Shown: positions 1,121 to 34,376 of the stretch, piece after piece
Layout: each line of letters begins with the position of its first letter
How positions within the stretch are numbered: position 1 is the first letter of the stretch
Assembly: GCF_001194135.2 (NCBI RefSeq)
Contig: NC_069002.1
Location: 36,346,608-36,386,021, forward strand
DNA: 39,414 bases
Reading direction: 5' to 3'
From: Octopus bimaculoides
Taxonomy: Eukaryota
The notes under the pieces: model-generated
Database searches by the model: none
Seen by the model: only the letters and a program-made list of their open reading frames with translations
What the model was told of the DNA's origin: nothing
Made by a program: the position numbers and the translations under genes

Positions 1121-1248
1121 CAAGGCGGCAAGCTGACAGAAACGTTAGCACGCTGGACGAAATGCTTGGCGGTATTTCACCCCCGTCGCTATATTCTGAG
1201 TTCAAATTCCACCGAATTTGAAATAATAATAATAATTATTATTATTAT

Positions 1249-1289
<41 letters not shown>

Positions 1290-1295
1290 TCATCA
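1008..1295 (+). repeat. (ATT)n and (AGT)n microsatellites flanking a SINE fragment
   Basis: Seen directly; (AAT)n also occurs at 1982-2046. Confidence 0.95.
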
Positions 1296-1980
1296 TTATT
1301 ATTATTTAAAACATTTTGATTCAGCCTTGTGCGAATCGTATGTATGCACATGTCATGCATATAATTGTGCATGCGTGTGTATGTATGTGCGTGTGTTTGC
1401 GTGCTTGTGTATGTACGTATATATGTAATATTTGTGTGTATGTATACATGTATGTATGTATACATGTATGTATGTAAGAATGCATGTATGTATGTACGTA
1501 TGTATGTATTAAATACAATCATAAAATTATGAAAAAAAACACCTTTTTTAAAAGACTATTTCCTGCTAATAGAATGCACATATGCGTGTTGCTGGTCTTG
1601 ATTCTAAATTTTATATATTTTTTCTTGTTGTTTTTCCTCCTTTTTGTTTCTCTTATCTCCCTTTGAATTAGATGGTGCTATTTGTTGCATATAAAACAGC
1701 ACATTAAAACCTAACGGATATTGGCTATAATTATTTTTTCTAGCGTCAGTTCGAACAAATCTTGAATGCGAAATATTGTGTTCAGAAAAACATAACTAAA
1801 AAATCATTGATAATGAATAGATAAAATATATATATATATATATAAATGATTCATTTTGTAGACATTGCATAGAAATTTTCATTCCAAGCTGTTTCTTTTT
1901 TAATTTTTATCCCGTAATTGTTTAGAAATGGAGTTTATGGCATTATTTCACATCGTCCACTTTTTCAATAAAATCGTCAC

Positions 1981-2043
<63 letters not shown>

Positions 2044-2239
2044 TAATGGTTTGAAATTTGGGCACAAATTCGGGAGAAGGAGAAAGTCGATAACATCGGC
2101 CCCAGTACTTATTTTATGGAATTCGAAAGGACGAAAGGCAAAGTGTTTTTTTTTTTTGTCTATCTTGGCTTTTATTCAATTAGTCCTTAATGTATAATCT
2201 TCTGCTGCTACTAACAACTTTTCTGTCTCACTTTGCAGC

Positions 2240-2960
2240 CTTCATTTTCTGAGGGCGCCACCTTCACTACCATTCACATCTTGGGCCACCAATCTACTAC
2301 TCGGGTCCAAGAAGATTGCTTTTACTTCGCTATCTAAGGATTTTCTGAATAGCACCGCTAACCCACCACTCACTCCCGGCAGACCACATGATAAGAATAT
2401 CTCGTAGTCATCGAAAATGAGCGCGAATGCTTGCGCATTAGAAATTGTTGTCTCGCTAATTGCAGCCACATCTAAATCGAGCAGCCTGAGGTTGTTTATC
2501 GAGTGACCTTGCTTCCAAGCTGATCCTAGGTCACGGACATTCACACACCCTACTCTGAAAACGACCGTGTTTATCGGAGAAACAAAATGGAAGAAGTTCA
2601 CCTACCTTGATTTTTGAGAGGGTCGGCTGATTCAGCTGCCTCGTCTAATGGATTATCATTAATGAAGGGCCTTCCTAAAGTCCTTTTATCCAGCTTTAGC
2701 CTAAAAGGCCCAATGACTTTTGGATATTTTTGTAAAGTTCTAGACAAGTGCTTGTGTCTGTTTTCATTAGCTGTCTGTCACGGGGAGTTTTCGACAGAAA
2801 TTTGTCGAACCCTACCCTTTTTGTATGAATGTTCGTGTTTTTCCCTACTTCTTGCCTCAGCTCGCTGATGCTCTTGCGAACAACTTGCGAAGTTTACGAG
2901 GCGTTCGGGTTTTCTTGTAAGTTGTATGAATTCTCCTTGTGATTACTGTTTCTCTTCGTA
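2240..2960 (-). mobile_element. L1/Tx1-type LINE fragment (ORF1 end and APE endonuclease start of ORF2)
   Basis: ORF 2242-2601 RVGCVNVRDL...LDLDVAAISETT...GVSGGLAVLFRK...SSRLV matches the N-terminus of an exonuclease-endonuclease-phosphatase (APE) domain. A basic ORF1-like region lies upstream. Boundaries are approximate. Confidence 0.7.
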
Positions 2961-5204
2961 TGTTTAGCAACAACAACAATAACAACAGAAAAGCATGAGA
3001 AAAAAGAGCACAAGCGCAAAATATAGATATTTCCTTTCTTGGCAGAAGGTTAGTGGGAAGGCGCAGCCATATGAATCAATATTTTGCCTCCATTAATGTA
3101 GTTTTATCTTCCTTTTTTTTTTGTTTTTGACTACTTTTTTCTGTTTTTCAACAGTATTTGCCAATTAAATGTTTGACAAATATCTTTTGAAATTTACAAA
3201 GAGGATAGAAACGGAAGCCATATAATGAGAGCATTTAGAAATTCAACTCGGCAAGGATTAGCTTTAAAATGTGTCATAAGACAATTTATTCTCGCGAGTA
3301 AATATTGTACGAGTAACGGCATATNNNNNNNNNNNNNNNNNNNNNNNNNNNNNNNNNNNNNNNNNNNNNNNNNNNNNNNNNNNNNNNNNNNNNNNNNNNN
3401 NNNNNNNNNNNNNNNNNNNNNNNNNNNNNNNNNNNNNNNNNNNNNNNNNNNNNNNNATATGTATGTATCGATGTATATATATATATATATTTGTACGTAT
3501 ATGTGCATGTATATATGTATGTATCGATGTATATATATATATATATGTATACATAAACATACGTATATATACTCACGTACATATATGTGTGTGTGTGTGT
3601 GTGTGTATTTATATATACATATATATACACATATACACATATATACATGTATATATGTACATATACGTACACAAATACACACACACACATATATATGCAT
3701 CAACATGATGCATGATGTGTTTGTGTGTTTCTATTAGTCTTTCACTCTTGTAAAACCAGTTGCTATGACGAAGTTGTAATGTTTCTTTAAGCTTCCTTTA
3801 TTGACCATCAATTTTATGGACGAGCCCATCAAGTTAGCACTAAATATTTTTTTTAATGTCAGTTCACACTCACAGATACACATTATGCACGTACAAGCAC
3901 ACAGACAGACACACATATAACTTGCACATATACATGTTATATGTCTGTGTGATGTATGAATCCTCACTTTCTCGCATATACGTGGGTTGTTACGAACAGG
4001 AAAAGCGTCGATTGGCTACGATACAAAATATCTCATGATTAAAAGATGTATTGATCAACATAAACCACATAGATATGGCAAGTGCCGAAGATAATGAAGA
4101 ACTGACGCTAAAGATGTGGCCTCTCTGATAAACAGATGCCTGAAAGTATCTGTCTTTGAGGGAAGATGTACGATAAAATTATTTATATTGTGCAATTTTA
4201 GTCCTGACGATGAAGCAGCACAAAATGATGCCGAGAGCGTAATTACCCATGATATGAAATATTGCTGTTAGATGGTTTCTCTTTTCTCTCTTCACTTGAT
4301 AGCGCTGATTCGTTTTACCTCCATATCTTCAAACTCCCTCCGAATGTGGCAAAGCGATAAGTAGACGTTGGTAGCAATACTTTTCGCGTTCGATGCGTTT
4401 GTTTGGTCTTCTAGCCAGTCGACGTTCATGGTGTAATTGGTGAAATCGATTCCTACAGGATGTCAGATACTCACGCTACATAAGCGAACCAGTTGATGCC
4501 CGTATAGTATAGTTTCAATGATCCTGGTGATAGTTGGAATGACTTCTGTGGTCGTAATCCTCTCTTATCATGAGAATGAAAAGATTTTCTGGAGACATTG
4601 GATAATAAAGGTCTTAAAAGCCTTTGTATCTCAGTTGCATCTTCTTCACATTTCTCGGTCATTCTGGAGAATAGAAACACAAATTATTCGGCAGATGACA
4701 AGAAGCTTGGTATGGAGACCGAAATGGGTACAACATCATAGAGTGTTGTACTTAAGTGTCACTATTTGCTATCTCTGCGAATTTCCCTGGTGATGAGTGC
4801 TTCAGGAAATTTAGTTTGACTGTTAGGGAGTGAGAAAAGATTTTACAAATATCAGAATTGTGGATCTTGTAGTAATTGAACTTTTTTGGCGTTTGGCCGG
4901 TATTTCCGGCACCTCTTGCATTTGGGGTGAGCTACAAACTTTTCTGTCAATCTCACCTTTGGATGTGTATCCTTCATAACACACATAACACACACCCTGC
5001 CCATCTATAAATCGTCAATGAGCAGATAACTTCTCCTTCAGTAGAGATCAGGGATCTGTCCATCACTCAACATCCTTCAATACACGGGGGGTGTTTATAC
5101 GATGTACTTATTTCAGTTTCCATCTACCAAATCCATTCACAACGCTTTGGTCGGCCCAAAGTAGAAGACACCTACATGTATATATATATATGTATATGTA
5201 TACC

Positions 5205-5263
<59 letters not shown>

Positions 5264-5774
5264 TCTTTTATTCCTTTACTTGTTTCAGTCATTAGACTGC
5301 GGCCATGCGTTGGTACCACCTTGGAGAAACTTAGGCGAATGAATTGACTAAATTGAATCTGCTACTTGATCTATCGTTCCATTTTGCCGAACTGTTATTC
5401 TTATTTGCACCTACGTAGAAAAATTCCTCACCTTCTGAAACTACTTTACACCTGTAGACCACCTCTTTAATTTTGCAACTTAATTTTAGTGGACATTATT
5501 TACGTTTTGCGCAATCGCAATTATTATCACTACCTATTATTCTACTCTATCCGACTTTTATTCTCCTATTTATATTCTCTGGTTTATTTCGCCTATTTTC
5601 TCCATTTTAACCAGGGAAGAAAAAATGTGAGAGCATCTATTATAAAATTCAAAAATAATTACTGAGTTAGAAAAGATACACAAGAAATGCTTCATATTTC
5701 GATGGGATCGGCCGACTCGATACAGGTTACCAACCTAGTAATATTTATTTATTTTTGCTGCTGTTATTTAGCAG

Positions 5775-5975
5775 GTGTTGCCTGAGTGATACTATACGGC
5801 ATTCGAAGGCCGTCTACACTGATCTCAGGCCTCTACTACCTTCATTCTTCTTAGGTAGAGCCTATCAACATCACTGTTTCTATGGAAATTCCCAGTTGTT
5901 GTCAGGATTTTTTGGGTTTTGGTATCCAAGGAGTCGATTTCCTCTACAGACCAATCAAGTATCCCAAATGTTGGC
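5775..5975 (-). mobile_element. Dong/R4-like non-LTR retrotransposon fragment
   Basis: Minus strand reads FGILDWSVEEIDSLDTKTQKILT...HRNSDVDRLYL.R..G.RGL, the post-RT motif typical of R4/Dong-type elements. Confidence 0.6.
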
Positions 5976-6021: not shown

Positions 6022-6087
<66 letters not shown>

Positions 6088-7087
6088 CACACACACACAC
6101 ACAAGGGTACCACTGAGTAGTCGTTTGGACTGCTGGAAATAGACGTACTTCCTTCTTTAAATTTCATTTTCCTCAGTTCTCGATACACAAAAAGACAAGA
6201 TACGTCACGGCTGGAATGCTTCTCATATTAGTTGTCTGTCCACCAGAAAGATGATGTGAATGGCGACGACGACGACGACGATCACAACAAACACAATTTC
6301 CAAATATTACAATGTATTCAAGGGAGATAACATAAGTAGTATTCTCTAGTTGCCTCCCTTGGATTATAAATTTTGATCACTTTGCCTATCATTTTAAAAT
6401 TGCATGAACCTCGGCACCGGATTGGTACTTTATTTTATTTCGGTAAGATATGAGAGAACTGAGGAAAATAAGGCTAAGCATTTTATTAAAGATTCTGCTA
6501 GGTCGCTGTTTAGTTCCTTCCTCAAAATGGACTAAAGAGGACAGGAGGAGACGCGTGGGATGGAGAGCCGCTGAAGAGATCATAGAATGTGCAGCGAAAG
6601 ATTTCGAGACATGGGACATAAAATGAGGAAAATATTAAAGCTGAATTGAAGAAATGTGTGTAACAAATTGGTTTAAAAATTTGTTTTTAATTAAAAATAA
6701 TAATAAAAAAAGGACAATTTCACGTCTGGAACCTTACAAATTAACTAAATAAACGTAAATGTTATTTCTAACCTAGGAACAAGACATGATATTTTGGTGG
6801 TGCAGAATTAATGGATTATGCCACCCCAGTACTTTACTAGTATTTATATTATCGATCCCAATGTCTGAAAGTATGCAGTCTTAGTTCATATTTCTTGTGG
6901 TTTATAAATTATATTTGTTTATCTTTTTTCTCTTTTTTTTATTCCTTGTTTCACAATCTGGTTATTAATTCCAGTAATATTACTACTGTAATATTTCTCA
7001 CCTTAGCTAAGAAAGTTTCATGAGATATCACAGCAAATTTTTTGTTTGCATGGCAGCAATCTGTCAAATAGTATTGAGCTACGAAAA

Positions 7088-7705: not shown

Positions 7706-7832
7706 TCATCCAATGGGAGCTATTCCGAGGTGTTCATTATAAACTTCATGACAAGGGCAGCTGGGTTTCAAAAGGCCGTTACATCTACATGACAAATTCT
7801 CACAGCAAAACAGTTCATTTCCTTTAGCTTCT
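7706..7832 (-). CDS. ICK-B terminal exon (paralogue of ICK-A last exon; encodes C3-C8 only)
   Basis: Phase-2 acceptor TATTTACAG/A is homologous to the ICK-A acceptor. Reads EAKGNELFCCENLSCRCNGLLKPSCPCHEVYNEHLGIAPIG*. The 3' UTR shares an identical 19-mer containing AATAAA with ICK-A. Confidence 0.7.
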
Positions 7833-11985: not shown

Positions 11986-13390
11986 TTTTATGCATATACC
12001 TACATATCTATACAGGCGTGCGTATATATATATCATGAACACTGACTGCGCCGAGTGGTAAAGCAGTGCACTTCGTAATCATAAGGTCTTGAGTTCGATC
12101 CCCAGTGAGCAACGTCTTAGTCAAGCCTCTTTTGCTGTAACCTCGAGTCGGCGCAGTCCCGTGTTATTGAGACTGCATACGTTGATAGGAAATACAGAAA
12201 TCAGCAGAATTGACGCTGTTTGCAATTTAAAGAACAAAATTATCTCACTCTATTTTATTCCAACTCAGCTGGGAATAGTTAAATATTTACACACATTATA
12301 AATCAATGTATTGATAGTTGAACTGATCGATAACGGGTGTAGTTGTCAATAAACCTAATCTCATAAATCGGGTATATCATTTGTAGATATATTACTCTGC
12401 AATAAATATTTACTTATATTGGTTTCGAATTCTGACACAAGGCCAGCAATTTCGGGGAGAGTGGAGTAGGTCGATTACATCGACCTCAGTACTCAGCTGG
12501 TACTTATTTTGCCGACTCCGAAAGGATGAACGGCAAAGTCGACCTCGGCGGATATTGAACTCAGAACGTAAAGACGGACGGAATACCGCTAAGCATTTTG
12601 CCCGGCGTTCTAACGCCCTACTCAATGCCTTCTTTCTCTCGTACATTGAACTTAAGGTTTTTCTCTGCTGGACAAAGGAAATCTACTACTTTGCGTCCTA
12701 ATTTGTTTCTGATTAACGCATAAAGCCAGACATTTGATGAGAAAAGGAGATTAGGTGATAGCATCGACCCCAACACTTGATTGAAAGGATCAAAATCAAA
12801 GAGCTGACCTCGGCCAGATTTGAAGCTGGAATGTAACAAGGCGGGTTAAGTCCACCAAAGATGTCTTTTCCAACGCTTTAAACATTCGGCACACTCTCTG
12901 CTTTTATTATTCTGTAATAATGGTTTAAAATTTGGGATTCAAGGCCAGCAATTTTTATGGGATGGGATAAATCGATTACATTATCCTCAGAATTTGATTG
13001 ATACTTTATTTTATCGACCCCAAAAATTGAACTCGGCGCGATTTGAACTGAAAACTGAAAGAAATTCTGCTGCGCATTTTGACCGACATTTTAACGATTC
13101 TGCTAGCACGCCGCCTTTGTTATTTTTTTATTATGAAATTAAACATGCTATGCATAAATTCAAAAGTGCTGCTTTTGACTAGATTAGATAACGAAATCCT
13201 AGACACACGATCTTTGAAAAAAAGATGGCGGCCGCACCGGTGTGGCACGAATGGATCATAAACGTAGATTTATCTTCTCGATAACTGCGGAAATACGTAG
13301 ATTAACCATATCAACAGTCAAACCAAAAGTATTTACATCAAGCTGTAGAAACTGAAGATTTAATGATAACTCTAGATTTAGAGTTATCAT

Positions 13391-14608: not shown

Positions 14609-14614
14609 TTTATT
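14609..14614 (-). terminator. Polyadenylation signal AATAAA of ICK-A
   Basis: AATAAA on the minus strand about 110 nt after the stop, within a motif conserved with ICK-B. Confidence 0.55.
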
Positions 14615-14720: not shown

Positions 14721-15803
14721 TCAGCCAGATGGGGGGTTGATTCCAATATCTTCATATGTCAATTCATAACAGCGGCAGTTCGATTTCCAGAACGGGTTAC
14801 ATCTACACTCCATACCTTCACAGCAAGTATATTCTATTGTAGTCTTTTTGACAGTGCATGTCCATTTATATATTGCACATTTAATATCACGTCTTTTAGC
14901 CTCTCTATAAATACAGAAAATATGAACAGACTAATAAATACAAAAGTTACCGACAGAAGCAGCATCAATAGTATGAGGCACTCTTTATATCATTTCTAAC
15001 GTGGATGTATCATTTGGTTCTTCTTTGAGGAAAAAATCTTCGATCGAGACCAAAAGTCTAACGAGTGAAATGACAGGCGGTTATGCACAAATCCTTCTGA
15101 AGTCTCTGGAATGTTGCACACTAAATCTCTAGCGACTAAGATGGATTTGAGATTAGGGAATAACAGAGGATATACCATGCCACACCCCATTTTTCTACAG
15201 GGTCTTATAAGTTATGTTGTTGGATATGCTGGAATACTGCAGACAGTTATTAAGCCCAGGTGGATATACTGTGCGCTGGAATGTCAAACGAATATCAACA
15301 AGACACAGCACCAACACGAAGAACCCAAAAATCCAACAACAGATGTCAGACAATAAATACGATCATGTAAAACCGAAGTTGTGGTCACCAGACTCTCCGG
15401 ATTAAAAATCTCATGGATTATTACGTTTAGGGTACTGTTAAAAAAGGAGACTAATCGATATGTTCACAGTACCATAGCTTTATTGAATGTTGTCTTGAAA
15501 GAATATGGACCATTTAGTACAGGTACGCCAACTATTCCAATCTGCATTGAAGCAGTCATCGAAGTTAACGGCGGATTGATAAAAGTAATCATATAAAACA
15601 GTTAATCGATAACACATCTTTTATCTTTTACTTCTCTCAGTCATTAGAATCCGGCCATGCTGGGGCACCGCATTGAAGCATTTTAGTCGAGCTAGTCGAA
15701 CCTAGAACTGCTGATTCTGTCAGACTCATTGCCGAACCGCTACGTGACAGCGACATAAACGCAGACACAATGACATACATGCACATACAAATGCACAAAT
15801 GTG

Positions 15804-15876
<73 letters not shown>

Positions 15877-18499
15877 GTGTGTGTCTGCGTGTGTGTGTGT
15901 GTATATGTGTGTGTGTGTTTGTGTTTGGTTATAGATTTATATAAGTACAGGTTAATTGGAAGTATCAATATATATTTAGTTACTACCAATAAAAACAGAT
16001 CGAAAATAAGCGTAGGTAAGACTAACTTATCATCAGTCTACGAATAAATATTTCGCCAACAGCTCTAACACAAATACAAATGTCATAGTTATAATCGTTC
16101 ACTCCCAAAGCTAGATGGCCGTTCATGGCTCTCATGGACCGACGTCCTTTGCTGAGTGTTGTTTTTTCGTCCATCAAGGTGTCTATTCACCCACTTCACT
16201 AGACTTGATTGGGGAAATTTTGGACACGAACAAATCTGAATTGAGTGAGGCAACCTACGTAAATGAAAGATGAGTCGGCGAAAGAGAAAAGCGAGTGGGA
16301 ATAAAGACTAGAAATAATACAGATGAGTGTTTCATTGTGTGTCCAGTATACGGCCGCAATTATGCACTGACTTTGGTCTCAGATCTCACCTGAATGTACA
16401 CAAATGAACAAAGTGCTAGGTTGGATTTTATCAACCATGATAGTCGACCAACAACAAAAAGTTATACTCGAAGTAATAAAAGTCTTACCTATTTAGCGAA
16501 CCATCGACAGGTTCCCGAGCACTGAGAGCAGCTTCATCATGGACTGATATATAAGATAAGCTTTAAGATTAGATTTCGGTTTACCAGCAGAATGTTTCAA
16601 AATATTCACATGAATAGTATAGCAACAATTTAGTAATTTATTTTTAAATATACTCTACCAGAAAATCTGAAGGGAAATTTGTGAAGCAGAGACTCATTAT
16701 CTTCTTTCATACATACATACATACATACATACATGCATACATACATACATAAGTACACTAACTACATACTGAGAAATAGATATATACATGCATACACTCA
16801 TTATAAACTAAGAGAATGAGAGAGGTGGAGATAGTGTCTTGGGTAAGCAATCGAGATAAAAACAGAAATAGAATTTTGCCGTTGCACCACTTTCTTGACT
16901 TTCATACAGGGAAACTAACCAATAATGAATTGTAAAAGGCGCTGTAAAAAAACAAAATAATCATCCAACTATATTCTAGAAGGATTAAACACGGAAAACT
17001 GGAGTATTCAGTGCCTCTAAGTCGTTTAGGTTACAAATGTATTGGTGAGACATCGAGGTAAAAGAGTGATAGAAATATTTATAGATAGATAGATAGATAG
17101 ATAGATAGATCCATTCATTCATTGTGTGAGATTGATAGATAGCATTTCTTATTGGGAAGAAAGTGACTTATTACAATTCAAAAGCTTTCTTTAGAGAAAT
17201 TTTTAAAAATAAAAACGGAGTTTCATCATTAGTTTTCCATCTGTAATCAACTTACCTATTTTAAAAGATGAAATTTGATGTCTTCGAAAATTGTAGCTTA
17301 ACTGCTTTAAATATCCTGTTGAAGAACACAGACAGACAGAAAGACAGGCAGACAGGGAAGCAGACAGACAGAAGAGTGCGAGAGAAGAGGCGAGTTGCAA
17401 ACAGAACCTGATTTTCTGTTACAGGTAGAAATATTTCGCAAAAATTATTATAGCGATTCCTTTGTAACTGAAAATAGTGAACTTCAGTAGAACATCATAT
17501 TTTACTCTAGCGCTATTTTCTTTACCTTCTTTTCGACCTATGTGCTCGGATGTGTGTGCGTGTGAAGAGTCTGAAGAAATATCATAGAAATCTGTTTCCA
17601 ACGCCCCTAACTTCTTTATTGCCCACAAGGGGCTAAACATAGAGGGAACAAACAAGGACAGACGAACGGATAAAGTCGATTAAATCGACCCCAGTGCGTA
17701 ACTGGTATTTAATTTATCGACGCCGAAAGGATGAATGGCAAAATCAACCTCGGCAGAATTTGAACTCAGAACGTAACGGCAGACGAAATACCGCCAAGCA
17801 TTTCGCCCGGCGCGCTACCGATTCTGCCAGCTCGTCGCCCTCATTTAAACAATAATTGTGAAAACAAGAATAAAAGTGAAAAATGAAACGAATATGATTT
17901 TGGCACTGGTCTTTGCCCGTCATTTGACTGAAAAGTTGTTGCTGTTGGCACTCCGTCGCTAACGACGTCGAGAGTTCCAGTTGATCCGATCAACGGAACA
18001 GCCTGCTCGTGAAATTAACGTGCAAGTGGCTGAGCACTCCACAGACACGTGTACCCTTAACGTAGTTCTCGAGGATATTCAGCGTGACACAGTGTGACAA
18101 GGCTAGCCCTTTGAATTACAGGTTCAACAGAAACAGGAAGTAAGAGTGAGAGAAAGTTGTGGTGGCAGAGTACAGCAGGGTTCGCCACCATCCCCTGCCG
18201 GAGCCTCGTGGAGCTTTAGGTGTTTTCGCTCAATAAACATTCACAACGCCCGGTCGGAGAATCGAAACCGCGATCCTATGACCGTGAGTCCGCTGCCCTA
18301 ACCACTGGGCCATTGCGCCTCCACTGACTGAAAAGTAAGCACAGAAAATAGAGACAATTCCATTATATCACTCTCCTTCTTCTCCTGCCAGTACCCCTTC
18401 TCAAGTTACAAGGTCCATGTAGTACTTACCTAACTTATACGTTAAGACGTTTGAAAGTAGCACACAGTACCAAAAGCAGAGAACAAGGAGTGTTTTCAT
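14721..18499 (-). CDS. ICK-A: secreted agatoxin-like (inhibitor cystine knot) peptide precursor, 4 coding exons, 117 aa
   Basis: Exons 18499-18430, 17570-17526, 16543-16489 and 14904-14721. All introns are GT-AG with compatible phases 1,1,2 (donors GTAAGT, GTAAAG, GTAAGA). Spliced product: MKTLLVLCFWYCVLLSNVLTYKL-DSSHAHTSEHIGRKE-VHDEAALSAREPVDGSLN-REAKRR/DIKCAIYKWTCTVKKTTIEYTCCEGMECRCNPFWKSNCRCYELTYEDIGINPPSG*. It has a hydrophobic signal peptide, a KRR site, C-x6-C-x10-CC-x4-CxC-x7-CxC, a terminal Gly, and AATAAA about 110 nt past the stop. Confidence 0.8.
15000..15595 (+). mobile_element. Tc1/mariner transposase relic in ICK-A intron 3
   Basis: Reads LWSPDSPD-L..MDYYV*G.VKKETNRYVHST...CIEAVIEVNGG, the C-terminal DDE/D motif WPPNSPDLNP.DY..WG, with frameshifts. 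Confidence 0.75.
17585..17843 (-). mobile_element. SINE family A copy
   Basis: Head GGCGACGAGCTGGCAGAATCGGTAGC...GAGTTCAAATTC. Other copies at about 1121-1220 (+), 12415-12620, 12930-13115, 26600-26820, 31640-31795, 33410-33580, 36810-36950 and 38349-38548 (+). Confidence 0.8.
17937..18324 (-). mobile_element. Full-length tRNA-derived SINE with 12-bp TSD, in ICK-A intron 1
   Basis: tRNA-like head GGAGGCGCAATGGCCCAGTGGTTAGG...GTTTCGATTC. TSD TGACTGAAAAGT at 17925-17936 and 18325-18336. Confidence 0.85.
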
Positions 18500-20807
18500 C
18501 ACGTCACCTGTTAATATACAAAGTCAACAATCAGAGATATTGATAGATGTATATGTATGATGCATTTGCTACGTTGCTAGAGTTCGCATAACCACAACGG
18601 GGAAAACATGGAGCTAAAATTTAAGTGTTTTATATTTTACTGTTCTGCTTGGCTGCGTCCAATAACTGGCGATGAAATATATATGAACGACATATTACTC
18701 TTTAGATAATCAAAATTGAGTCTTCCCTATAAAGAAGAAATATGTTCCGAACGAACAGATGCTACAATACTGTAATTTGCATAAGCACGACGTTGAAAAA
18801 TAGACATCGAGCAGTGAAAAACAAACAAAAGTGTCGCATATTTTTTTGGTTAAGTTCGGTTGCTTCCAATAAGCAAAACAAGACATGGATGAACATGTGT
18901 GTAAAATATATAACACTATAATCATGTGTAAATACAACGCACCGGAATCGAACTCAGAATCTTGTGACCGCAACACCCTAACCACAAGCCACGCTTTTTC
19001 ACATAAAGTATTTCTATATTATACTATGTAAATATGTAGAACTACATATAGATGAAAATAAAAATTGGTATATATATATATATATATNNNNNNNNNNNNN
19101 NNNNNNNNNNNNNNNNNNNNNNNNNNNNNNNNNNNNNNNNNNNNNNNNNNNNNNNNNNNNNNNNNNNNNNNNNNNNNNNNNNNNNNNNNNNNNNNNNNNN
19201 NNNNNNNNNNNNNNNNNNNNNNNNNNNNNNNNNNNNNNNNNNNNNNNNNNNNNNNNNNNNNNNNNNNNNNNNNNNNNNNNNNNNNNNNNNNNNNNNNNNN
19301 NNNNNNNNNNNNNNNNNNNNNNNNNNNNNNNNNNNNNNNNNNNNNNNNNNNNNNNNNNNNNNNNNNNNNNNNNNNNNNNNNNNNNNNNNNNNNNNNNNNN
19401 NNNNNNNNNNNNNNNNNNNNNNNNNNNNNNNNNNNNNNNNNNNNNNNNNNNNNNNNNNNNNNNNNNNNNNNNNNNNNNNNNNNNNNNNNNNNNNNNNNNN
19501 NNNNNNNNNNNNNNNNNNNNNNNNNGGGTTTCAATTTCCGTCTTCGAAATTCACTCACAAGTCTTTGGTGGGCCCAAGGCTATTGCAGAAGACACTTGGC
19601 CAAATGATATTGAACTCGGAACCGCGTGAGTGGTAAGTAAACTTCTTACCTCGCCCGCGCCTATTAATATATTGTAGATAACAAGGAGACTACGTAATGA
19701 ACAAATTTCAGTGTAAAGATAAATGTAAACTTCTCGACGTAAAATACACAAGGACCTATCATTAAATATTAGAACATAGAAAAAGAACCGATGTAATCGA
19801 CTTAACCCTTCCCCACGAAGTTGCTGCCCTTGTGCCAAACTTTGAAACCAACATGTGTTTTAAAGCTGTCACTTACTCTGTTGTATTTTTTGCTGAACCG
19901 CAAAACAGGGGAACTCCACAAACCAACACCAGTTGCCAAACGGTGTGGGGATAAAACACAAAGACAAAGGCGCAAATATATGCATTCGAGAATGGAAGTT
20001 AACGGGCTTTTATAGTGGATCACGACGTACGTTTCTGCACCCCGCATCAGCTTTATGTTGACGGGTTTATTAATTTTAATGATTTCTATGCATTTGAACA
20101 TTATCCAACAACAGCTGTCTGCGGTAGTTTTCAGTGAAGTACGCGATTTTTACTCAAATTACACCAAGCAAATATATATATATATATATCTGTAATTACA
20201 CTTTAAGCTTCCATACGGTTTCCAAATAGACACTCATACCTGCGTCTACACTGGCATTACTAACTTACACACAGAACCAAAAATTATAATTTATACCAGA
20301 CCTTTTTGTTGTATCCGTCCTTTTGAATCAAATTACGTTGTGTAAATCTGACTGCGTCTTCAGAATTCTTTTAAACAAGAATCAAATACGTTCATGTTAC
20401 GTCGACTGTCTGAAAATGACCCTCCCATTAAACCCCATTTAGTTCAACCGTTCCCAACTTTCTTTAAGTGTTACGACTTCTTTTTTTTTTTACAGTCAAC
20501 ACCATGTAGAGAGCCAGATGATTAATTACTTATTAGTTAATGAGAGCATTGTTTTTTTATTGTCATCGTACCTGTGTTAATTAGTAATTAAAAAGTCACT
20601 TTAATGTATAATCTTGTTTATGTTTTTAACGTGTATCTGCCAACTACGCAAGCTATTAAAATATGAGAAACGACAACATAATGGCCATCATTGAGTATAG
20701 ATTATTCGACAACCAGTCCTGTTGTTCTTCAGAAGTATATCATCAGGAATCAAGGTGACTATAGCCAGCATCATTTTACCTACGACAATCATGTTTTGTG
20801 CCATATT

Positions 20808-21602: not shown

Positions 21603-22929
21603 ACTGAGAGGGAGATAGAGAGGCTATCTGACGTATGCGTGTTTTGTAGGAGGGTGAAGGTGAGACGACCTAGATGGCAGTGTCAGGTTGGATGAAAATA
21701 TATAAATCTCATATAAAGTAGCAAAACCGTAATACTATAACAATTAGAAATATATTAATTATAATGTTAAATAAGGGCAATTAGAGGGTACTTAAAACCA
21801 TATACAAATACGAACTAAAAATTATAAATTCCTTTAAATATATATATATATATATTTACACACATATTTACACACATATTTACACACATATATACACACA
21901 TATACATACGTATATACATATATAAGTGTATTTTTATTCTTTTACTTATTTCAGTAATGTAGATTGCAGCCATGGTGGAGCACCGCCTTAAAGGGTTTTT
22001 AGTCGAAGCAATTGACCCCACATATACACACATGCCTTTATGTGTATGTGCATATAGACAGTTAATGATAAGGCCCAATTAATGAGGAAATATGAAGGCC
22101 GCCTTCCGATTGTGACTTCAAGACACGCAACAATGTCATTTTGCCATTCATCTCTCTTTGGTCTATAAAATATGTACAAATGAAGAAGTAGTTTGAGAGT
22201 CATCGATTAACCTTTCCACTCAACGCTGGTGGCTCTGTGTCTTCTGAAATTCGAAACAATAATTGGATGTGATATGATGAAGCTCTCTGACCATTGGTGT
22301 ATGATAGCTTCATCCAGTTCATATGAAATCGGAGTTACACATTTCATCTTGAGCGTAAGTAATGGCTCTGGTCTCAAATGGAGTATAACATGTTGGGGCA
22401 AGAATTTTGGTGCATGCCGCAGAGAAAGATCTTTTACCTTTTATTTGTTTCAGTCATTTGAATGCGGCCATGCTGGGGCACTTCCTTACATCGAGCGAAT
22501 CGACCCTAGGCCTTTTCATAAGTACTTATTCTAGCTTACTCATTTGTTTAATCGCTAATGTAGAATCTTGAAGATATTTTTAGACAGTTACTGAATACCG
22601 TCCCACATTTAGAGCAAAATCGACATGCATACATTTTTTGCTGGTATCTGACGTATACCTAGAATATACCTGAAGATCATCGATTCTTCGCCTAGATTTC
22701 TCTTGCCGAGATTAGTCACTGACATCTCTAATAGACAAAGAAAATAGTGAGACCGTTAATTAATAGAGATACGTAATATTATGCTCTGTCAGAAAGTGTT
22801 GTATTTGTAAAGATATCGGTTACATAATTTTCTGTGTGGGAATCATATGCCACATGTGTTTAGCATCAAACAATCATGTTTATTCAGGTGTGTGTTTGAT
22901 ATCAATGCAACATATTGACACAATATACA

Positions 22930-23082
22930 GTGAAATGTGAAGGAAAGATTGATTTGGGATATAGAAAATAGAGAAAATACTTTCGTTTGGGTACATTTCA
23001 CATACAACATTCCGTCAAATGGAAATTGACAAACCTCACATAATTGCTTGGGACATAGTTATAGAAGCCAGAGGCTTTTGAA
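22930..23082 (+). promoter_or_regulatory. Putative promoter and non-coding exon 1 of ICK-C
   Basis: Block conserved in the paralogues, with a TATA-like TATAGAAAA and a donor GAA/GTAAGA at 23083, about 290 nt before the signal exon. Confidence 0.5.
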
Positions 23083-23382
23083 GTAAGAACATTTCATTCA
23101 CAGTTAACAGAATCGAGAATATTTATGGACAAATGCTTCGAAGACATCATCATCACCTAAATTAAATATTTACATTAGTACTTTTGTTGGAATTAAATTT
23201 GCTGTATTACTAATTGTTTAAACGATAATGTTATAAAACTTGAATTTTCAGCGAAATGAAATTGGATAGAGAAAATATCATTGTTACCTAAATTTCAGCT
23301 GTCGACCTTTGCTTCTTTGTAAGAATAAAGCTTCCGTTTTTAATTACCTTATTTGTTATATTTCTTTATCAGCAGGTGCGTG

Positions 23383-25111
23383 ATGAAAGGCATCAGTGTC
23401 TTATTGTTTTGTGCATTCATTTCATACAGCTTCTCCGATGAACAAAGTAAGTATAATCAGAAACCTCTTTTACTTTATAGTCATCAGATATGTAGTGGGA
23501 GAAAAGGGGGAAAATAGAAATGTGGAAAGAAGAAAAATGAATAACGTTATCTCAGCGGTCTTTCGTATGTACCCCATTTATATGTAATTACAGCTTTCAA
23601 ATAGATAACTCTATTTATGTACATTACTCATTGACCAAATGTTCAGAATTACGATTCTTCAATATAATATAACACATTTAATTAACGATGGCTGGCTAAT
23701 TCTTTATGTACAAATCGGGAAGAATTCTAGTGAAGTGCTGCCATCTGTTACTCCCATATAAGATCAGAACGTAAGCACGGACGAAATGACACTAAGCATA
23801 TCGTCCGTCGAAGTAATGATTCTACCAGTTCGCCACTGCCTTTAGGACTCTTAATTATTAAAATCATTACAGTATAGACTCAGCAAGTGCTATATATAAT
23901 GTTTCATGTGTTTGTTTTGTTTTGCTTTGTTGTCCTTCCATATTTTATGACTGCGTTGGTTTTTATCTCTTTTACGTATTACAAATACCCGTCACTACAA
24001 TGATGAGCAATGTGAAGTGTCTTTGTGAGGGAATATGAGTTTGAGTCGTCATGGTTCTGCATCTTACTTCAGATGATGTTATTATAAATACATCATCCTC
24101 TATTTTATGAATTATCTATTGAGTGCTACTTGAGGATTTTGGGTATTTCTACACAAAATTTTGGTAAATGGATATTTAATTCTTCAATATGTATTTTAAT
24201 ATCTCTTTCAGATGTCACTTCCGTCCATCGACAGACAACAGCTAATGTAAGTTTGAATAACATGACTCATAGGTAAGAACTACATATCTACATCTGTTAT
24301 CGAAGTAATAATAGACTAACACCCTCAGTAAGGTTTCATGGCTTATGCCGTAGTAGAGAGGTCATTAGTATTGGGGCAATCCTATTCTTAAGACTGTTTC
24401 CAAATTATAGTTTTTGCGCAAAAGAAAATGTGAAACGGAAAATATGATTGAAAAAAAAATCTTCATGAGTAAAAGTTGAATATTTGTTTATACTTTGCCT
24501 ACAAAGTAATTTAACAGTTTATTCAGATATAGGCGCAAGTATGGCTGCCTGGTTAAGAAGTTCACTTCGCAACGAAAAAGTGTGAGGGTTTAATCCCTGA
24601 ACATGTGTCTTCTGCTATACCCTCAGCCCGATCTATACTACCTCAATGGATGTGATTGAATGGAATTCTATAATATATATCTACTAGGGAGACCCGTGGA
24701 AATTCCACAGAATTGAAAAAATAATTTACGAAAGAAAAGACGATTTGCATTTTTATAGCATTCATAGTTAAGCGTTCTTTAAATATCCTTGACGTTCGTC
24801 TACATTCATTTCCTCCCGTCTCCGTCGGTGTTGTCTTTTCCTCTTTTTATCATATTTTCTTGCTGTCCCTCTCTGATCTGTGTTCGATATCTGTGCATCC
24901 TTTCTCGGGCAGCGTGTTTCCTCTGTATAAACTTTTATAAACAAATATCAAATTTTAAGCGAGCAGACGATAAATAATTGCACTTATGCGTTAAACGATG
25001 GTCACTTTGAAAAAAAAAATTCGTTCAATAAAACAAAAATTCGTTCAATAAAAAAATAATACTTTTCATTATCAACACACCACCATCACCGCCGCCACTG
25101 TCGCTATCTGC

Positions 25112-25197
<86 letters not shown>

Positions 25198-25322
25198 ATA
25201 ACTACCTCACCTGTCCATCCCTCTCTTTCTACCTTTCCCTTCAGCTAACTTTTTAATCACGTAATAAGTATTCCTTCCCCACCCCACCGCACATCGTTAA
25301 CACGTCTCTTTCTCTCTCTCTC

Positions 25323-25359
<37 letters not shown>

Positions 25360-25679
25360 CGTCTAATCCTTTCCCTTGAAAATTCCTGCCCTTCTCCCTA
25401 AACGAGAAACCATAATTTAATGACTTATTTCCTACCATATTCTGTATTTACAGTGGCAAGTGTAAGAGAACCCTATGTTCAATGTATGAGTGTAACCGAT
25501 ATTTGACAGACAAGAATTGCTGCCCAGGTGTGAATTGTCATTGTAATTTACCACAACGGATATGCATGTGTAGTTCACAAAATATCATCTATGGGACTCA
25601 TAACAGTATACTCCAAAGTATAATTGCTCTTCCCATTTTTCTTGTAAATTTACATCTTATTGACGTTCTGTTCTTGTGA
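23383..25679 (+). CDS. ICK-C: knottin precursor with hydrophobic C-terminal (GPI-like) tail, 3 coding exons, 116 aa
   Basis: Exons 23383-23446, 24212-24272 and 25454-25679, with phases 1 and 2 and donors GTAAGT and GTAAGA. Product: MKGISVLLFCAFISYSFSDEQ-NVTSVHRQTTANVSLNNMTH-SGKCKR/TLCSMYECNRYLTDKNCCPGVNCHCNLPQRICMCSSQNIIYGTHNSILQSIIALPIFLVNLHLIDVLFL*. Confidence 0.8.
25104..25355 (+). repeat. (CT)n tracts in the ICK-C last intron
   Basis: Seen directly. Confidence 0.95.
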
Positions 25680-25854
25680 ATCTTGTGGATAAATTTCATG
25701 CATCAGATTCTTTTTATACAAGGAGAAAAATCGATGAAATCACGAAGACAAAATATTTGTTTTAGGTAAGAATTTAGAACTGTAATACATACAGAAACCA
25801 AAGGAAACAGGCAAATATCAAAAGTATATTCAACTACAAAAACATCAACTAGTG

Positions 25855-25866
25855 CTGTTGCTGCTG

Positions 25867-25930
<64 letters not shown>
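25855..25930 (+). repeat. (CTA)n microsatellite 3' of ICK-C
   Basis: Seen directly; its homologue is the (TAG)n tract 3' of ICK-D. Confidence 0.95.
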
Positions 25931-27551
25931 ATCTTCAATTTTAAAACTAACTCAATTATCAAATCCTATATCAAAAGAATACTACGAATAAATTTCATGA
26001 AACAAAGTGAAATATTAAATATTAACGAGCAGAAGTTTGATTTTGTAATTTATCCCTGAAAGAAATTCACGGATGTTGTACCAAAAACTGAAAAGGTAAA
26101 GAAGAGAGAATGAGCAAAACATAACCTACCATTATGACATTTCTAAAACCCCTAAATTAGCAGACATGGTTCTTGCATTGTATTACTCATATTTTTTTTA
26201 ATAAAACGTTGTTTGTGCAAGCAATTAAAACTTCTTTCTTGTCTAGTGTTAACTAATTCAATTTTCAAAGTAAATATTTGATATAATTCTTCTAGGCACA
26301 AATTGCATTTTTCGTTCCCTATTTTCTAAACTAATAACGGGGAGAATTACTCCTTGAACAATGGCTGAAGAGATCGTACAGATTATGCATAAATCCCTGC
26401 GTATAAATATGAAGAAATTTGCAATTGATACAATCGAAATACGTGTCGGACAATTACTATAAATAAACCAAACAGAAAGTCTGAATGTTCAAATTCTTTG
26501 TTTCCCTTATTATTAGAGAGTGTGGGGGTGAGTTTGTGTGTGTGTGTGTGTGTGTGAATTTGCCTGTCTGTATGTTAGTGTGTTTGTATACACGTATTTA
26601 CGCATAATTGTAAAGAGTGATCTAGCGGAACGTTTCGCACACCGGTGCTGCTTAACGGCACATCATCCGTCTTTATGTTCAGAGTTCAAACGCTGCCCAG
26701 GTCGACATTACCTTTCATCACTCTGGGGTTGATAAAATAAGTACCAGTTGAGCACGGCGCTTGATATAATCGATTTACTCAATCACCGAAACCTTCTGGC
26801 CTTGTGCCCAAAATATGAAACACACACACACACGTGTGTGTCTGTGTGTGTAAGCGTCTGTATGCCAGTAGGTATGTCTTTTACATATATGCATATGAGT
26901 GTATGTATAGATAGAGATAGAGAAGACTAAGAGATAGGTGAATAAGAATATGAATTGGCACGCGTATGCATGTTGTTAAAATATTAGCTTCACAATCCCA
27001 CACTTTTGTCAGAAATACGGGAGGGGCACAAGCGGAAATCTTACTGAGTCGTCCAGTATAGCTTAATTTTTGTATTAATTCCATAATGCTTGCAATGGAC
27101 TTAATGTATACGAGACGTTATACTTCATGCTTATCCTCTTCCTATATTTCAAAATAACCTGAAAAGCCCGAGTCAGTACAACTGTTGTAGGTCCAAGTTA
27201 GACTACTTTGTTTATCTACCTTATCGGAACTCTTATGCTTTTCTAACACAATATTCCATACTAGACTTTTATTTGATTTATTATAGTGTCGGAAACTAAA
27301 TTAATATAGTGCAGAAGAGTCCATATAATTTTCATCTGTGGCTAACTTGTCTCTACTTTGACGTTTCTCTTTCAGGTGGTATTATATGTACTCGTATCAT
27401 TCTTCCTCAGAAATCTGAAAAGTAGGCGGTTTATTGCAAGTGCTGTTGCGTGAAGTGTCTTTCATTTCTTAATCAATACTGAAGATTTAACTTGGCCAAA
27501 CACCACACTGATGCTTGTATCTTTCTATGAGTCAATCACATGAACTTTTAT

Positions 27552-29480: not shown

Positions 29481-29800
29481 NNNNNNNNNNNNNNNNNNNN
29501 NNNNNNNNNNNNNNNNNNNNNNNNNNNNNNNNNNNNNNNNNNNNNNNNNNNNNNNNNNNNNNNNNNNNNNNNNNNNNNNNNNNNNNNNNNNNNNNNNNNN
29601 NNNNNNNNNNNNNNNNNNNNNNNNNNNNNNNNNNNNNNNNNNNNNNNNNNNNNNNNNNNNNNNNNNNNNNNNNNNNNNNNNNNNNNNNNNNNNNNNNNNN
29701 NNNNNNNNNNNNNNNNNNNNNNNNNNNNNNNNNNNNNNNNNNAGGAGGAGGAGGATGGGGAGGAGGTAAAGTAGCAGCAGCAGCAGCATCAACAGCAACA
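29339..29800 (+). repeat. (TAG)n/(CAG)n compound microsatellite 3' of ICK-D (with gap)
   Basis: Seen directly; flank 29281-29340 is reverse-complement homologous to 25930-25990. Confidence 0.9.
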
Positions 29801-29956
29801 ACACTTAATTGATATTTTTGTAGTCGAGTGTGTTTTGCTGTGTTTGGATCCTTTTTTGTTTTTTTGGTCTGTCTTCGTGATCTCACCGATTTTCTCCTTG
29901 TATAAAAACCAATCTAACGTATGACATTTATCCACGAGATTCACCAGAGCAGAACG

Positions 29957-32511: not shown

Positions 32512-32836
32512 CACGCACCTAATGATATAGAAATATAACAACGGGAGTCATTAGAAACGGAATCTTTATTCCTACAAAGAAGCAAAGGTCTGCAGCTGAA
32601 ATTTAGCTAACATCTTTTCGCTGTCCAAATTTATTTCACCGAAAATCCGAGCTTTACAGCATTATCATTTAAATACTAAAGAATATAGCTAATTTAATTG
32701 CACCAATAGGTCTAATGCAAATTTAATTCCAACAAAAGTACTAATGTAAATATTTAATTGAGGTGAAGATGATGTCTTCGAAGAATTTGTCCGTAAATAT
32801 TCTCGATTCTGTTTACCGTGAATGAAATGTTCTTAC

Positions 32837-34297: not shown

Positions 34298-34329
<32 letters not shown>

Positions 34330-34339
34330 NNNNNNNNNN

Positions 34340-34376
<37 letters not shown>

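Follow-up and report, generated by a model that had tools for sequence, protein, structure and literature searches.

In the Octopus bimaculoides genome, the window analysed here (39,414 nucleotides) carries a gene, ICK-A, which we regard, with a probability of about 0.8, as a diverged paralogue, specific to this lineage, within the CCWamide/agatoxin-like peptide (ALP) family, with three coding exons at 14721-18499 on the minus strand. NCBI lists it as uncharacterized LOC128250542 (Octopus bimaculoides), and we read it as one of several diverged copies that this known family has gained in octopuses, an expansion that seems not to have been described. CCWamide/ALP peptides are protostome-wide knottin neuropeptides for which neither a receptor nor a function is known (PMC8557429, PMC13311285). 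The analysis amends the "uncharacterized protein" annotation, a probably mis-called start codon and a fused O. vulgaris gene model.

The exon model was built by hand and then compared with NCBI proteins; reading the strand for bacterial-style open reading frames was of no use at this eukaryotic locus. From the ATG at 18499 to the stop at 14721 (minus strand), three coding exons joined by GT-AG introns with consensus flanks encode a 102-aa prepropeptide (CDS 309 nt), which by exon reads MKTLLVLCFWYCVLLSNVLTYKL/VHDEAALSAREPVDGSLN/REAKRRDIKCAIYKWTCTVKKTTIEYTCCEGMECRCNPFWKSNCRCYELTYEDIGINPPSG and stop, and which is identical to residues 40-141 of NCBI XP_052831778.1 (LOC128250542 isoform X1). Exon 1 (18430..18507, minus strand) follows an aacag/ acceptor (slashes mark exon borders), has its ATG at 18499-18497 and ends in a phase-1 donor, TTAG/gtaagt. 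Its product, MKTLLVLCFWYCVLLSNVLTYKL, shows a mean Kyte-Doolittle hydropathy of 2.0-2.4 over the first ~15 residues and an n-h-c layout that points to a signal peptide. Exon 2 (16489..16543, 55 nt, minus strand), set between a phase-1 cag/ acceptor and a phase-2 donor, AATAG/gtaaga, encodes the non-conserved spacer VHDEAALSAREPVDGSLN (18 aa) and supplies AG, the first two bases of an Arg codon (AGA) that is split by the second intron (AATAG/gt...ag/A). The terminal coding exon 3a (14721..14904, minus strand) opens after a tatag/ acceptor with the last base of this codon and continues with EAKRR, an eight-cysteine domain, an acidic tail, a Gly codon and the TGA stop at 14723-14721; an AATAAA polyadenylation signal (14609..14614, minus strand) begins 107 nt past the stop. 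A SINE-like repeat lies in intron 1, and an ARAGORN search of it found no tRNA.

The NCBI coding sequence starts 39 residues upstream of M40, in exon e0 (19877..19985, minus strand; tblastn of XP_052831778; donor CAGA/gtaagt), which contributes 36 codons and 1 nt (MHIF...QQS). This exon is probably a 5'UTR exon and its start codon mis-called by NCBI. The motif TATAAAAG is situated at 20014-20007 on the minus strand, just 29 nt upstream of the e0 ATG, and the 82% nucleotide identity of e0 with O. sinensis is not above the intron level. Translation from the e0 ATG would give an N-terminal extension and thus bury the signal sequence inside the protein.

The C-terminal peptide of the precursor comprises 55 aa and is preceded by the hydrophobic N-terminus, the 18-aa spacer and an R...KRR stretch. 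Its eight-cysteine domain, CRCNPFWKSNCRC, contains the predicted cystine-knot core from Cys1 to Cys8 (14769..14879, minus strand; CAIYKWTCTVKKTTIEYTCCEGMECRCNPFWKSNCRC) with the spacing C-x6-C-x10-CC-x4-C-x-C-x7-C-x-C, and the stretch NPFWKSN between Cys6 and Cys7 carries the aromatic residues F and W. The original prediction described a complete amidated agatoxin-like prepropeptide with C-x6-C, a KRR site, a terminal Gly and an acidic tail, and all four elements are present in the minus-strand sequence. The putative prohormone-convertase site KRR (AAA AGA CGT, 14889..14897, minus strand) is nevertheless specific to O. bimaculoides in this comparison, being KGD (AAA GGA GAT) in O. sinensis; the mature N-terminus is uncertain because the site differs between these two closely related octopus species. 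The acidic tail YELTYEDIGINPPSG (15 aa, 14724..14768, minus strand) has a calculated pI of about 4 and closes with a Gly codon (14726-14724, minus strand), a possible amidation donor. This glycine is the sole basis for calling the peptide amidated; the C-terminus reads ...NPPS-G, and since Ser precedes Gly, the aromatic amide that defines the family is absent.

To place the peptide, an HMM was built from 38 published CCWamide/ALP peptides and run on 1214 six-frame segments of the window, where exon 3a was the top match (35.7 bits, E=4.8e-10 over the 1214 segments). The alignment takes in the first 39 of the 44 profile positions, interrupted by one insertion of one residue, and all eight cysteines occupy invariant Cys columns of a 25-sequence family alignment. 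In leave-one-out scoring, divergent peptides already accepted into the family reach 27.7-38 bits, and ICK-A lies within this range, under the canonical molluscs (55-66 bits). Shuffled versions with fixed cysteines scored 11.7 +/- 5.2 bits (maximum 28.6) and none of 1000 reached the real 36.5 bits, so that non-Cys residues carry signal. In Pfam, the best match of the mature peptide was PF02819 Toxin_9 (20.2 bits, E=7.6e-4, below the gathering threshold of 21.3). Of five canonical ALP/CCWamide precursors compared with Pfam, four likewise matched Toxin_9 best (21.1-25.5 bits); the fifth, a Phoronis PFW-type isoform, gave no Toxin_9 match. The conserved family layout described by Thiel et al. 2021 (PMC8557429) consists of a signal exon, a phase-1 intron, a spacer exon, a phase-2 intron and a peptide exon. 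ICK-A matches it exactly, including the phase-2 intron in an Arg codon (AG/A), and the layout was confirmed in the canonical O. sinensis CCWamide gene (CG/A) and in the paralogue LOC128250511 (AG/A). The profile score, the aligned cysteines, the Cys6-Cys7 aromatics, the three coding exons and the intron phases bear out the predicted assignment to the agatoxin-like/CCWamide family and the reading of the product as a complete prepropeptide for secretion.

The likeness could be convergent, with ICK-A derived from an unrelated knottin family that has only the Cys scaffold in common; knottin scaffolds recur widely, the Pfam match is sub-threshold and deep nodes of the tree have at most 12% bootstrap support. 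This is very improbable given a profile score far over the Cys-fixed shuffles, loop lengths equal to those of oyster CCWamide (C1-C2 = 6, C2-C3 = 10, C4-C5 = 4), and both intron phases together with the Arg codon split at the processing site, as in the family. Conversely, ICK-A could be taken for the octopus ALP/CCWamide orthologue itself, a conserved single-copy neuroendocrine peptide and the ancestral copy of the cluster: it has the motif CRCN.FW..NCRC, eight cysteines, a C-terminal Gly and the gene structure of the family, and on the profile it outscores the other three Cys exons in the window (36.5 vs 21.1, 15.7 and 13.7 bits). However, Octopus possesses a much better conserved CCWamide (...CKCNLWMQNCRCVNKLWGG; O. 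sinensis LOC118768477, O. bimaculoides A0A0L8HXQ3), which scores 61 bits in leave-one-out profiling against 36.5 for ICK-A. The canonical peptide of O. vulgaris/O. sinensis reads ...TCSKWRETCQPWSNSKSKCCDPSSLVCKCNLWMQNCRCVNKLWGG, and its mature region recurs unchanged in the O. bimaculoides fragment A0A0L8HXQ3. A tblastn search of the window did not find this gene, and in O. sinensis it lies on chromosome CM016860.1, whereas the ICK-A orthologue lies on CM016880.1. In a neighbour-joining bootstrap tree, ICK-A pairs with LOC128250511 (83%) outside the canonical cephalopod/mollusc clade, and the octopus paralogues attach within the family at no more than 12% support. One-to-one orthology with the conserved neuropeptide gene does not hold, strict orthology with CCWamide is refuted by the separate, better conserved gene on another chromosome, and we give this reading almost no credence. 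The accompanying suggestion that, of all copies, ICK-A lies nearest the ancestral one is only weakly true: it leads the four window scores, but LOC128250511 is equally ALP-like (38.4 bits), and the deep nodes of the tree are too poorly supported to decide the matter.

Decay of a duplicate would make the locus a pseudogene, or a transcribed non-functional copy, and the NCBI models prediction artefacts. All exons of the gene recur in the O. sinensis orthologue (exon 2 at L001:~13158-13217), whose ORF is likewise intact and reads ...IKR/EAKGDDVKC, with a dibasic site at the exon junction, its usual place in the CCWamide/ALP family. Among 38 substitutions in total, dN/dS is 0.57 overall and about 0.96, roughly neutral, in the spacer; changes cluster in the spacer and in the loops of the N-terminal part, whereas hardly any fall in the C-terminal half. 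In the tail, 14 of 15 residues are identical, with three synonymous and one non-synonymous change (omega about 0.07, from very small counts). The overall omega would fit decay, as would the unconserved KRR site, the duplication-rich and repeat-rich surroundings and a sister exon, 3b, without two of the cysteines; in addition, no exact-match transcript-derived protein was found when M40-start sequences were looked up in the protein collection. Against this, both species have an intact ORF, splice sites that fit the consensus and a poly(A) signal, 8/8 Cys and the entire C-terminal half are kept, including tail codons with synonymous-only changes, and NCBI annotates two splice isoforms. Decay is therefore unlikely, a slim chance at best, and a retained divergent paralogue remains our preferred reading.

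At least seven CCWamide-like Cys exons were found in two clusters on one chromosome, and comparison of O. bimaculoides with O. sinensis points to recent duplications, an inversion and presence/absence differences in the history of these clusters. Exon 3b (7706..7832, minus strand), the alternative terminal exon of NCBI isoform X2, encodes REAKGNELFCCENLSCRCNGLLKPSCPCHEVYNEHLGIAPIG and a stop. It is a copy of exon 3a from which a deletion of 54 nt, in frame, has removed Cys1 and Cys2, and it scores 19.5-21.1 bits against the CCWamide/ALP profile; the AATAAA that follows exon 3a is kept in O. sinensis and in this duplicate (7613-7608, minus strand). No counterpart of exon 3b was found in the syntenic O. 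sinensis interval. The use of different exons by transcripts had been named as an objection to the original prediction, and it applies in part, isoform X2 exchanging exon 3a for 7832-7706.

The nearest relative of ICK-A, LOC128250511 (XP_052831629-31), is located at CM046622.1:29.15 Mb in the second cluster, 7.2 Mb from ICK-A, with 51% identity over 47 aa. The two agree exactly in Cys spacing, down to the extra residue between C6 and C7 (CKCNPFWRANCRC), as well as in the intron phases and the AG/A split Arg. Unlike ICK-A, LOC128250511 has its K-R two residues further from Cys1 (HKR-NDILC vs AKRR-DIKC), another signal peptide and spacer, other CCWamide-like genes around it, and a tail, SLSLSQTALEGCRKRK, with a ninth Cys and no terminal Gly. 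A phmmer search with exon 3a across 1.84 billion representative proteins recovered only octopus proteins and one spurious match (P0004, a 1593-aa repeat protein without the Cys pattern, rejected as non-homologous), and a homologue search with an alignment of six octopus Cys exons gave no matches. In the same underlying protein collection, a word-indexed search did find canonical CCWamide in cuttlefish genome and transcriptome data.

AF2 modelling of ICK-A yielded a low-confidence structure (pLDDT 63.5) in which residues 26-30 and 38-42 make up a β-hairpin, and for which the top Foldseek matches were ICK spider toxins (agelenin, TM 0.70 on target, rmsd 2.2; E>=0.3, non-significant); the model and these matches serve as consistency checks only. 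A profile of CCWamide/ALP peptides plus ICK-A matched solved ICK toxins in the PDB at E=2e-5 to 0.1, the best being Tbo-IT2 (7AY8, E=2e-5), with Mg2a and omega-agatoxin IVB also among them, and the ICK-A sequence alone had no significant match among PDB chains.

Considering this layout, we hypothesize that the 102-aa precursor would enter the secretory pathway through the predicted signal peptide, which begins at M40 in NCBI numbering. A prohormone convertase could then remove the spacer, at KRR in O. bimaculoides and at the K-R straddling the exon 2/3 junction in O. sinensis, and the eight cysteines would pair into the four disulfides of an inhibitor-cystine-knot core. Amidation at the C-terminal Gly may leave a Ser-amide, giving a product of ~54 residues, DIKC...NPPS-NH2, with a calculated monoisotopic mass of 6339.79 Da, and use of exon 3b as the last exon would yield a 6-Cys variant from the same gene. 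Outside the cell the product may serve as a ligand, whether for signalling or, in the manner of a toxin, to modulate a receptor or ion channel. A literature search covering the locus identifiers, octopus cystine-knot and salivary peptides and cephalopod CCWamide returned nothing on the ICK-A gene. Within the paralogue reading, it is possible, though doubtful, that a CCWamide duplicate was recruited, as in spiders and remipedes, as a secreted toxin or defence peptide (for example in salivary-gland venom, skin or mucus). The multi-exon clusters with their recent rearrangements, the concentration of substitutions in the N-terminal loops and spacer, the loss of the neuropeptide-type C-terminus, the profile matches to insecticidal ICK toxins and the restriction of ICK-A-type homologues to Octopus in the protein search, with canonical CCWamide found in cuttlefish, would all suit such a role, for which ALP-derived venom peptides are precedents (PMC8557429, PMC13311285). 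On the other hand, dN/dS is below 1 throughout, with no positive-selection signal, and the literature searched does not link the locus to octopus venom.

The recruitment of CCWamide/ALP neuropeptides into arthropod venoms is a textbook example. With the octopus set, molluscs would become a third lineage for studying whether toxin-like or other secreted functions follow when this neuropeptide is duplicated, and the octopus-specific diverged copies, with new C-termini, alternative terminal exons and copy differences between species, would give a natural variant series usable for de-orphanisation of receptors or targets. Speculatively, this undescribed expansion of CCWamide-derived knottins turns over rapidly, with alternative and phase-compatible exons, and ICK-A and LOC128250511 form a distinct "PFW-type" branch of it. 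Such a branch might go back to an ancient second type of CCWamide, to which the phoronid alternative-exon isoform (CKCGPFWFNNCRC) would also belong, or it might reflect a cephalopod recruitment of a neuropeptide as a toxin or secreted effector, parallel to that of spiders and remipedes.

Among known systems, spider ICK toxins (Tbo-IT2 7AY8, mu-hexatoxin-Mg2a 6AX2, omega-agatoxin IVA/IVB and agelenin 2E2S) resemble ICK-A in the CxC...CxC β-hairpin predicted for it; they are arachnid venom peptides. Arthropod ALP/U8-agatoxin-Ao1a peptides (Sturm et al. 2016; Tribolium, Apis, Centruroides) share with it the CRCNLWGxNCRC-type core, eight cysteines, the intron phases, two successive basic sites (at the exon junction and just before Cys1) and the C-terminal Gly. 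Their C2-C3 loop has 6 residues and that of ICK-A 10, so the loop, described in the original prediction as longer than in typical ALPs, is long relative to arthropod ALPs but not to spiralian CCWamides (10 in Crassostrea, 9 in canonical octopus). The arthropod tail, QRMGLFQKW-amide, is basic and aromatic, in contrast to the acidic, Ser-ending tail of ICK-A. Insect ALP is usually single-copy.

Spiralian CCWamides (Octopus vulgaris/sinensis, Crassostrea gigas, Lottia, Platynereis; PMC8557429) likewise come from short precursors, in which a signal peptide and a spacer lead by way of a basic site to an 8-Cys peptide at the C-terminus. They also share the C[KR]CN..W..NC[KR]C core with a C-terminal Gly, and a coding region of three exons whose first intron is in phase 1 and whose second, in phase 2, falls within a basic codon. 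Nemertean family members have alternative terminal exons as well (PMC8557429, Supplement 20), and so apparently does Phoronis CCWamide, whose isoforms share the first ~45 residues. Identity of ICK-A with spiralian CCWamides is only 30-42%; it has no PW after Cys2, and its C6-C7 loop is one residue longer (NPFW vs the canonical NLW), as in Phoronis CGPFWFNNC. Its tail is acidic, 15 residues long and ends in Ser-Gly, whereas theirs are basic, 4-6 residues long and end in Trp-Gly. Unlike the canonical CCWamide gene, ICK-A is multi-copy, varies between octopus species and occupies another chromosome.

By its sequence, ICK-A (the minus-strand gene LOC128250542) appears to be a diverged paralogue within CCWamide/ALP, the knottin neuropeptide family that unites spiralian CCWamide and the arthropod agatoxin-like peptide (ALP), and to have a C-terminus that is new and, as an alternative, a 6-Cys exon. 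The window is eukaryotic in character (GC ~35%, microsatellites, assembly gaps and dispersed repeats) and derives from the O. bimaculoides chromosome record CM046622.1, ~36.34–36.38 Mb. Translation of 14915–14715 on the minus strand gives REAKRRDIKCAIYKWTCTVKKTTIEYTCCEGMECRCNPFWKSNCRCYELTYEDIGINPPSG, closed by a stop codon, as its C-terminal part, and translation starting at 18499 yields MKTLLVLCFWYCVLLSNVLTYKL, after which comes a consensus donor; a 55-nt exon at 16543–16489 joins this first exon to the Cys exon in frame. The gene model is thus composed of exon 1 (18507–18430; ATG at 18499; donor TTAG/gtaagt; phase 1), exon 2 (16543–16489; acceptor cag; donor AATAG/gtaaga; phase 2) and exon 3a (14904–14721; acceptor tatag; TGA stop; AATAAA beginning 107 nt downstream), all on the minus strand. 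The spliced coding sequence of 309 nt encodes 102 aa that exactly match residues 40–141 of XP_052831778.1, labelled at NCBI as 'uncharacterized protein LOC128250542 isoform X1'. Translation and exon modelling recovered, in place, every element listed in the original prediction of a complete agatoxin-like prepropeptide. Within intron 1, at ~17600–18330, there is a dispersed, GC-rich, SINE-like repeat of ~180 bp; similar copies lie near 12436–12615, 26666–26821, 36805–36947 and 38350–38503, several are also found in the O. sinensis locus, and ARAGORN detected no intact tRNA in the repeat.

NCBI places the translation start of LOC128250542 at 19985, in an additional upstream exon (19985–19877, minus strand) that adds 39 residues (MHIF...) before the signal peptide. 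We infer that this is probably a 5'UTR exon with a miscalled start, because a textbook signal peptide starts at M40, TATAAAAG (20007–20014) precedes the NCBI ATG by just 29 nt, and the exon is conserved no better than introns. The opposite strand carries an annotated 153-aa gene from window position 20663 to beyond 29985 (converted from the gene table), and this span suggests that the two genes are arranged head-to-head.

Family membership was assessed with an HMM built from 38 mature CCWamide/ALP peptides taken from the published supplements to Thiel et al. 2021 (PMC8557429). When every six-frame segment of the window was scored (1214 in all), the ICK-A exon was the top match (35.7 bits, E = 4.8e-10), and ranks 2–4 were occupied by the other three Cys-rich exons, at 7.7 kb (19.5 bits), 30 kb (12.0 bits) and 25 kb (9.5 bits). 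The ICK-A alignment covers profile positions 1–39 of 44, with all eight cysteines in register and one residue inserted. Shuffles of ICK-A with fixed cysteines scored 11.7 ± 5.2 bits (maximum 28.6), and none of 1000 reached the real value of 36.5; the match therefore goes beyond the cysteine scaffold. In leave-one-out scoring, accepted members reach 27.7–65.9 bits, with 61.1 for the canonical octopus peptide, and the ICK-A score falls among the divergent members (nemertean CCWamide-2/3, Phoronopsis). With Pfam Toxin_9, ICK-A scores 20.2 bits, below the threshold of 21.3, while the same model matches four canonical ALP/CCWamide precursors, out of five tested, at 21.1–25.5 bits. The C2–C3 loop of 10 aa, initially taken to be unusually long, proved to be of ordinary spiralian length. 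The amidated aromatic C-terminus, a published criterion of the family, is absent from ICK-A, whose 15-residue tail is acidic, with a pI of about 4, and has Ser-Gly at its end.

Gene structure served as an independent test. CCWamide and ALP genes have three coding exons in common, the first of which carries the signal peptide and the last the peptide, and a phase-2 intron divides the codon for a basic residue at the site of processing (PMC8557429); the supplement of the same study gives intron phase 1 and then phase 2 in Lottia, Tribolium, Centruroides and Notospermus. The ICK-A layout is an exact match, with phase 1 followed by phase 2 dividing AG/A (Arg). The same intron layout is found in the canonical O. 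sinensis CCWamide gene, where CG/A is divided within HRRRK, and in LOC128250511, the closest paralogue of ICK-A, where AG/A is divided. The corresponding junction of the ICK-A orthologue in O. sinensis is ...IK-R/EAKGDD, i.e., K-R spans the intron, as is typical of the family.

The proposal that ICK-A is itself the ALP neuropeptide orthologue was not borne out. A separate canonical CCWamide, represented in O. vulgaris by a transcript and in O. sinensis by LOC118768477 (...TCSKWRETCQPWSNSKSKCCDPSSLVCKCNLWMQNCRCVNKLWGG), is highly conserved, and the O. bimaculoides fragment A0A0L8HXQ3 has a mature region identical to it. The canonical gene is absent from the window, and in O. sinensis it is located on CM016860.1 (208 Mb), a different chromosome from that of the ICK-A orthologue LOC115223109, CM016880.1 (30 Mb); ICK-A is therefore a paralogue. 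When 1.84 billion representative proteins were scanned in full with phmmer, relatives of ICK-A turned up in octopus only. The underlying collection does contain the canonical CCWamide of cuttlefish, from genome and transcriptome data, which makes the confinement of the ICK-A type to octopods plausible rather than proven.

LOC128250511 lies on the same chromosome as ICK-A, 7.2 Mb distant, and its peptide region reads HKR-NDILCAQWQWKCAEVPRTPDETCCDGFFCKCNPFWRANCRC...; it has three isoforms with different 5' exons. It belongs to a second cluster of CCWamide-like genes (CM046622.1:29150904–29186003; local 24867–25097 on the plus strand, 6057–6419 on the minus strand and 468–695 on the plus strand), where the family profile gives its two CCWamide-like neighbours 36.8 and 13.5 bits. 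This cluster also contains a fourth small gene, at local 33221–35100. In a neighbor-joining tree, ICK-A of both species groups with LOC128250511 (83% bootstrap), and the 25-kb and 30-kb exons form another group with the O. sinensis 5.4-kb exon (66%). ICK-A is indeed the most ALP-like of the four exons in the window and may sit closest to the ancestor of the cluster, but its nearest relative in the tree comes from outside the window and the support for deeper nodes is ≤12%.

The four Cys exons of the window are, judging by sequence, true paralogues of each other, since the preceding introns agree at their 3' end (ttctgtatttayag) and the acceptor is phase 2 in each case. The 25-kb exon (25416–25676, plus strand) encodes ...KR-TLCSMYECNRYLTDKNCCPGVNCHCNLPQRICMC... 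and the 30-kb exon (29960–30208, minus strand) ...KR-HGRCNELYCDRSSYTPQYACCPGTRCRCKRFRICLC...; on the CCWamide/ALP profile they score 13.7–15.7 bits, not significantly above Cys-fixed shuffles (p about 0.07–0.12). Both are internal exons, unlike ICK-A: the knot is not followed by a stop, and the phase-1 donor GTATAC is conserved. The block with the 25-kb exon (~22600–26000) duplicates, in inverted orientation, the block with the 30-kb exon (~29700–33000), and O. sinensis has a single copy (local 1189–5846; exon at 5427–5606), so that cluster copy number differs between close species. In the O. vulgaris model CAI9738754.1, three units of a spacer and a 30-kb-type Cys exon are joined to ICK-A exons 2 and 3. 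Such read-through products are frame-compatible because of the intron phases (1-2, 2-1); the model is more likely a fused prediction, although it could be a multi-knottin transcript.

In NCBI isoform X2 of ICK-A, exons 1–2 are spliced to another terminal exon, 3b (7832–7706), which encodes REAKGNELFCCENLSCRCNGLLKPSCPCHEVYNEHLGIAPIG up to the stop. DNA alignment identifies it as a copy of exon 3a, with acceptor, 3'UTR and AATAAA likewise copied, in which a clean in-frame 54-nt deletion takes out Cys1 and Cys2. Nothing in the collinear O. sinensis locus corresponds to the interval bearing this exon (~12296–6673).

Introns are 80–91% identical between O. bimaculoides and O. sinensis, which are therefore too close for conservation to tell exons from introns. 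Omega between them (Nei-Gojobori, 102 codons, tiny counts) was 0.57 for the whole coding sequence, 0.96 for the spacer, 0.65 for the knot domain and 0.07 for the tail. All knot replacements except one fall between Cys1 and Cys3, and the tail carries three synonymous changes and one replacement; the counts are tiny, yet the pattern agrees with a secreted peptide that is functional, its spacer neutral and its C-terminal half under constraint. KRR is not a conserved site, being AAA AGA CGT in O. bimaculoides and AAA GGA in O. sinensis and exon 3b; LOC128250511 has a K-R near this place, two residues farther from Cys1.

ICK-A alone had no sequence match in the PDB. A profile of the family together with ICK-A matches the solved ICK spider toxins Tbo-IT2 (E = 2e-5), Mg2a, omega-agatoxin IVB and purotoxin-1, and also the remipede Xt3a. 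AlphaFold2 modeling from a shallow alignment (pLDDT 63.5) placed the expected CxC/CxC β-hairpin, and the top Foldseek matches of the model are ICK toxins, none of them significant. The precursor would be secreted via its signal peptide and cleaved by a convertase, presumably at KRR (O. bimaculoides) or at the K-R of the junction (O. sinensis); four disulfides would form in the knottin core, the terminal Gly may be amidated, and the resulting peptide would act as a ligand outside the cell. Even canonical CCWamide/ALP has no known receptor or function (PMC8557429; PMC13311285). ICK-A may act as a neuronal signal or as a toxin-like secreted effector, the latter with a fairly low probability.

The CCWamide/ALP family, its gene structure and its paralogue expansions in other phyla are already known; in the library searched, no literature was found on the ICK-A gene or on an octopus CCWamide-like expansion, and the annotation reads only 'uncharacterized'. 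Alternative terminal exons recur in the family: they are stated for Notospermus (Supplement 20 of PMC8557429), and Phoronis isoforms have their first ~45 residues in common. The Phoronis CCWamide isoforms (PMC8557429 supplements: comp81603 seq3/seq7; comp71831 seq1/seq7) combine a common signal and spacer with two knottin ends, either canonical CNLW-type or CGPFWF[NT]NCRC-type. The latter has a one-residue C6–C7 insertion and a PFW motif, like ICK-A and LOC128250511, a likeness that could reflect either an ancient common type or convergence.
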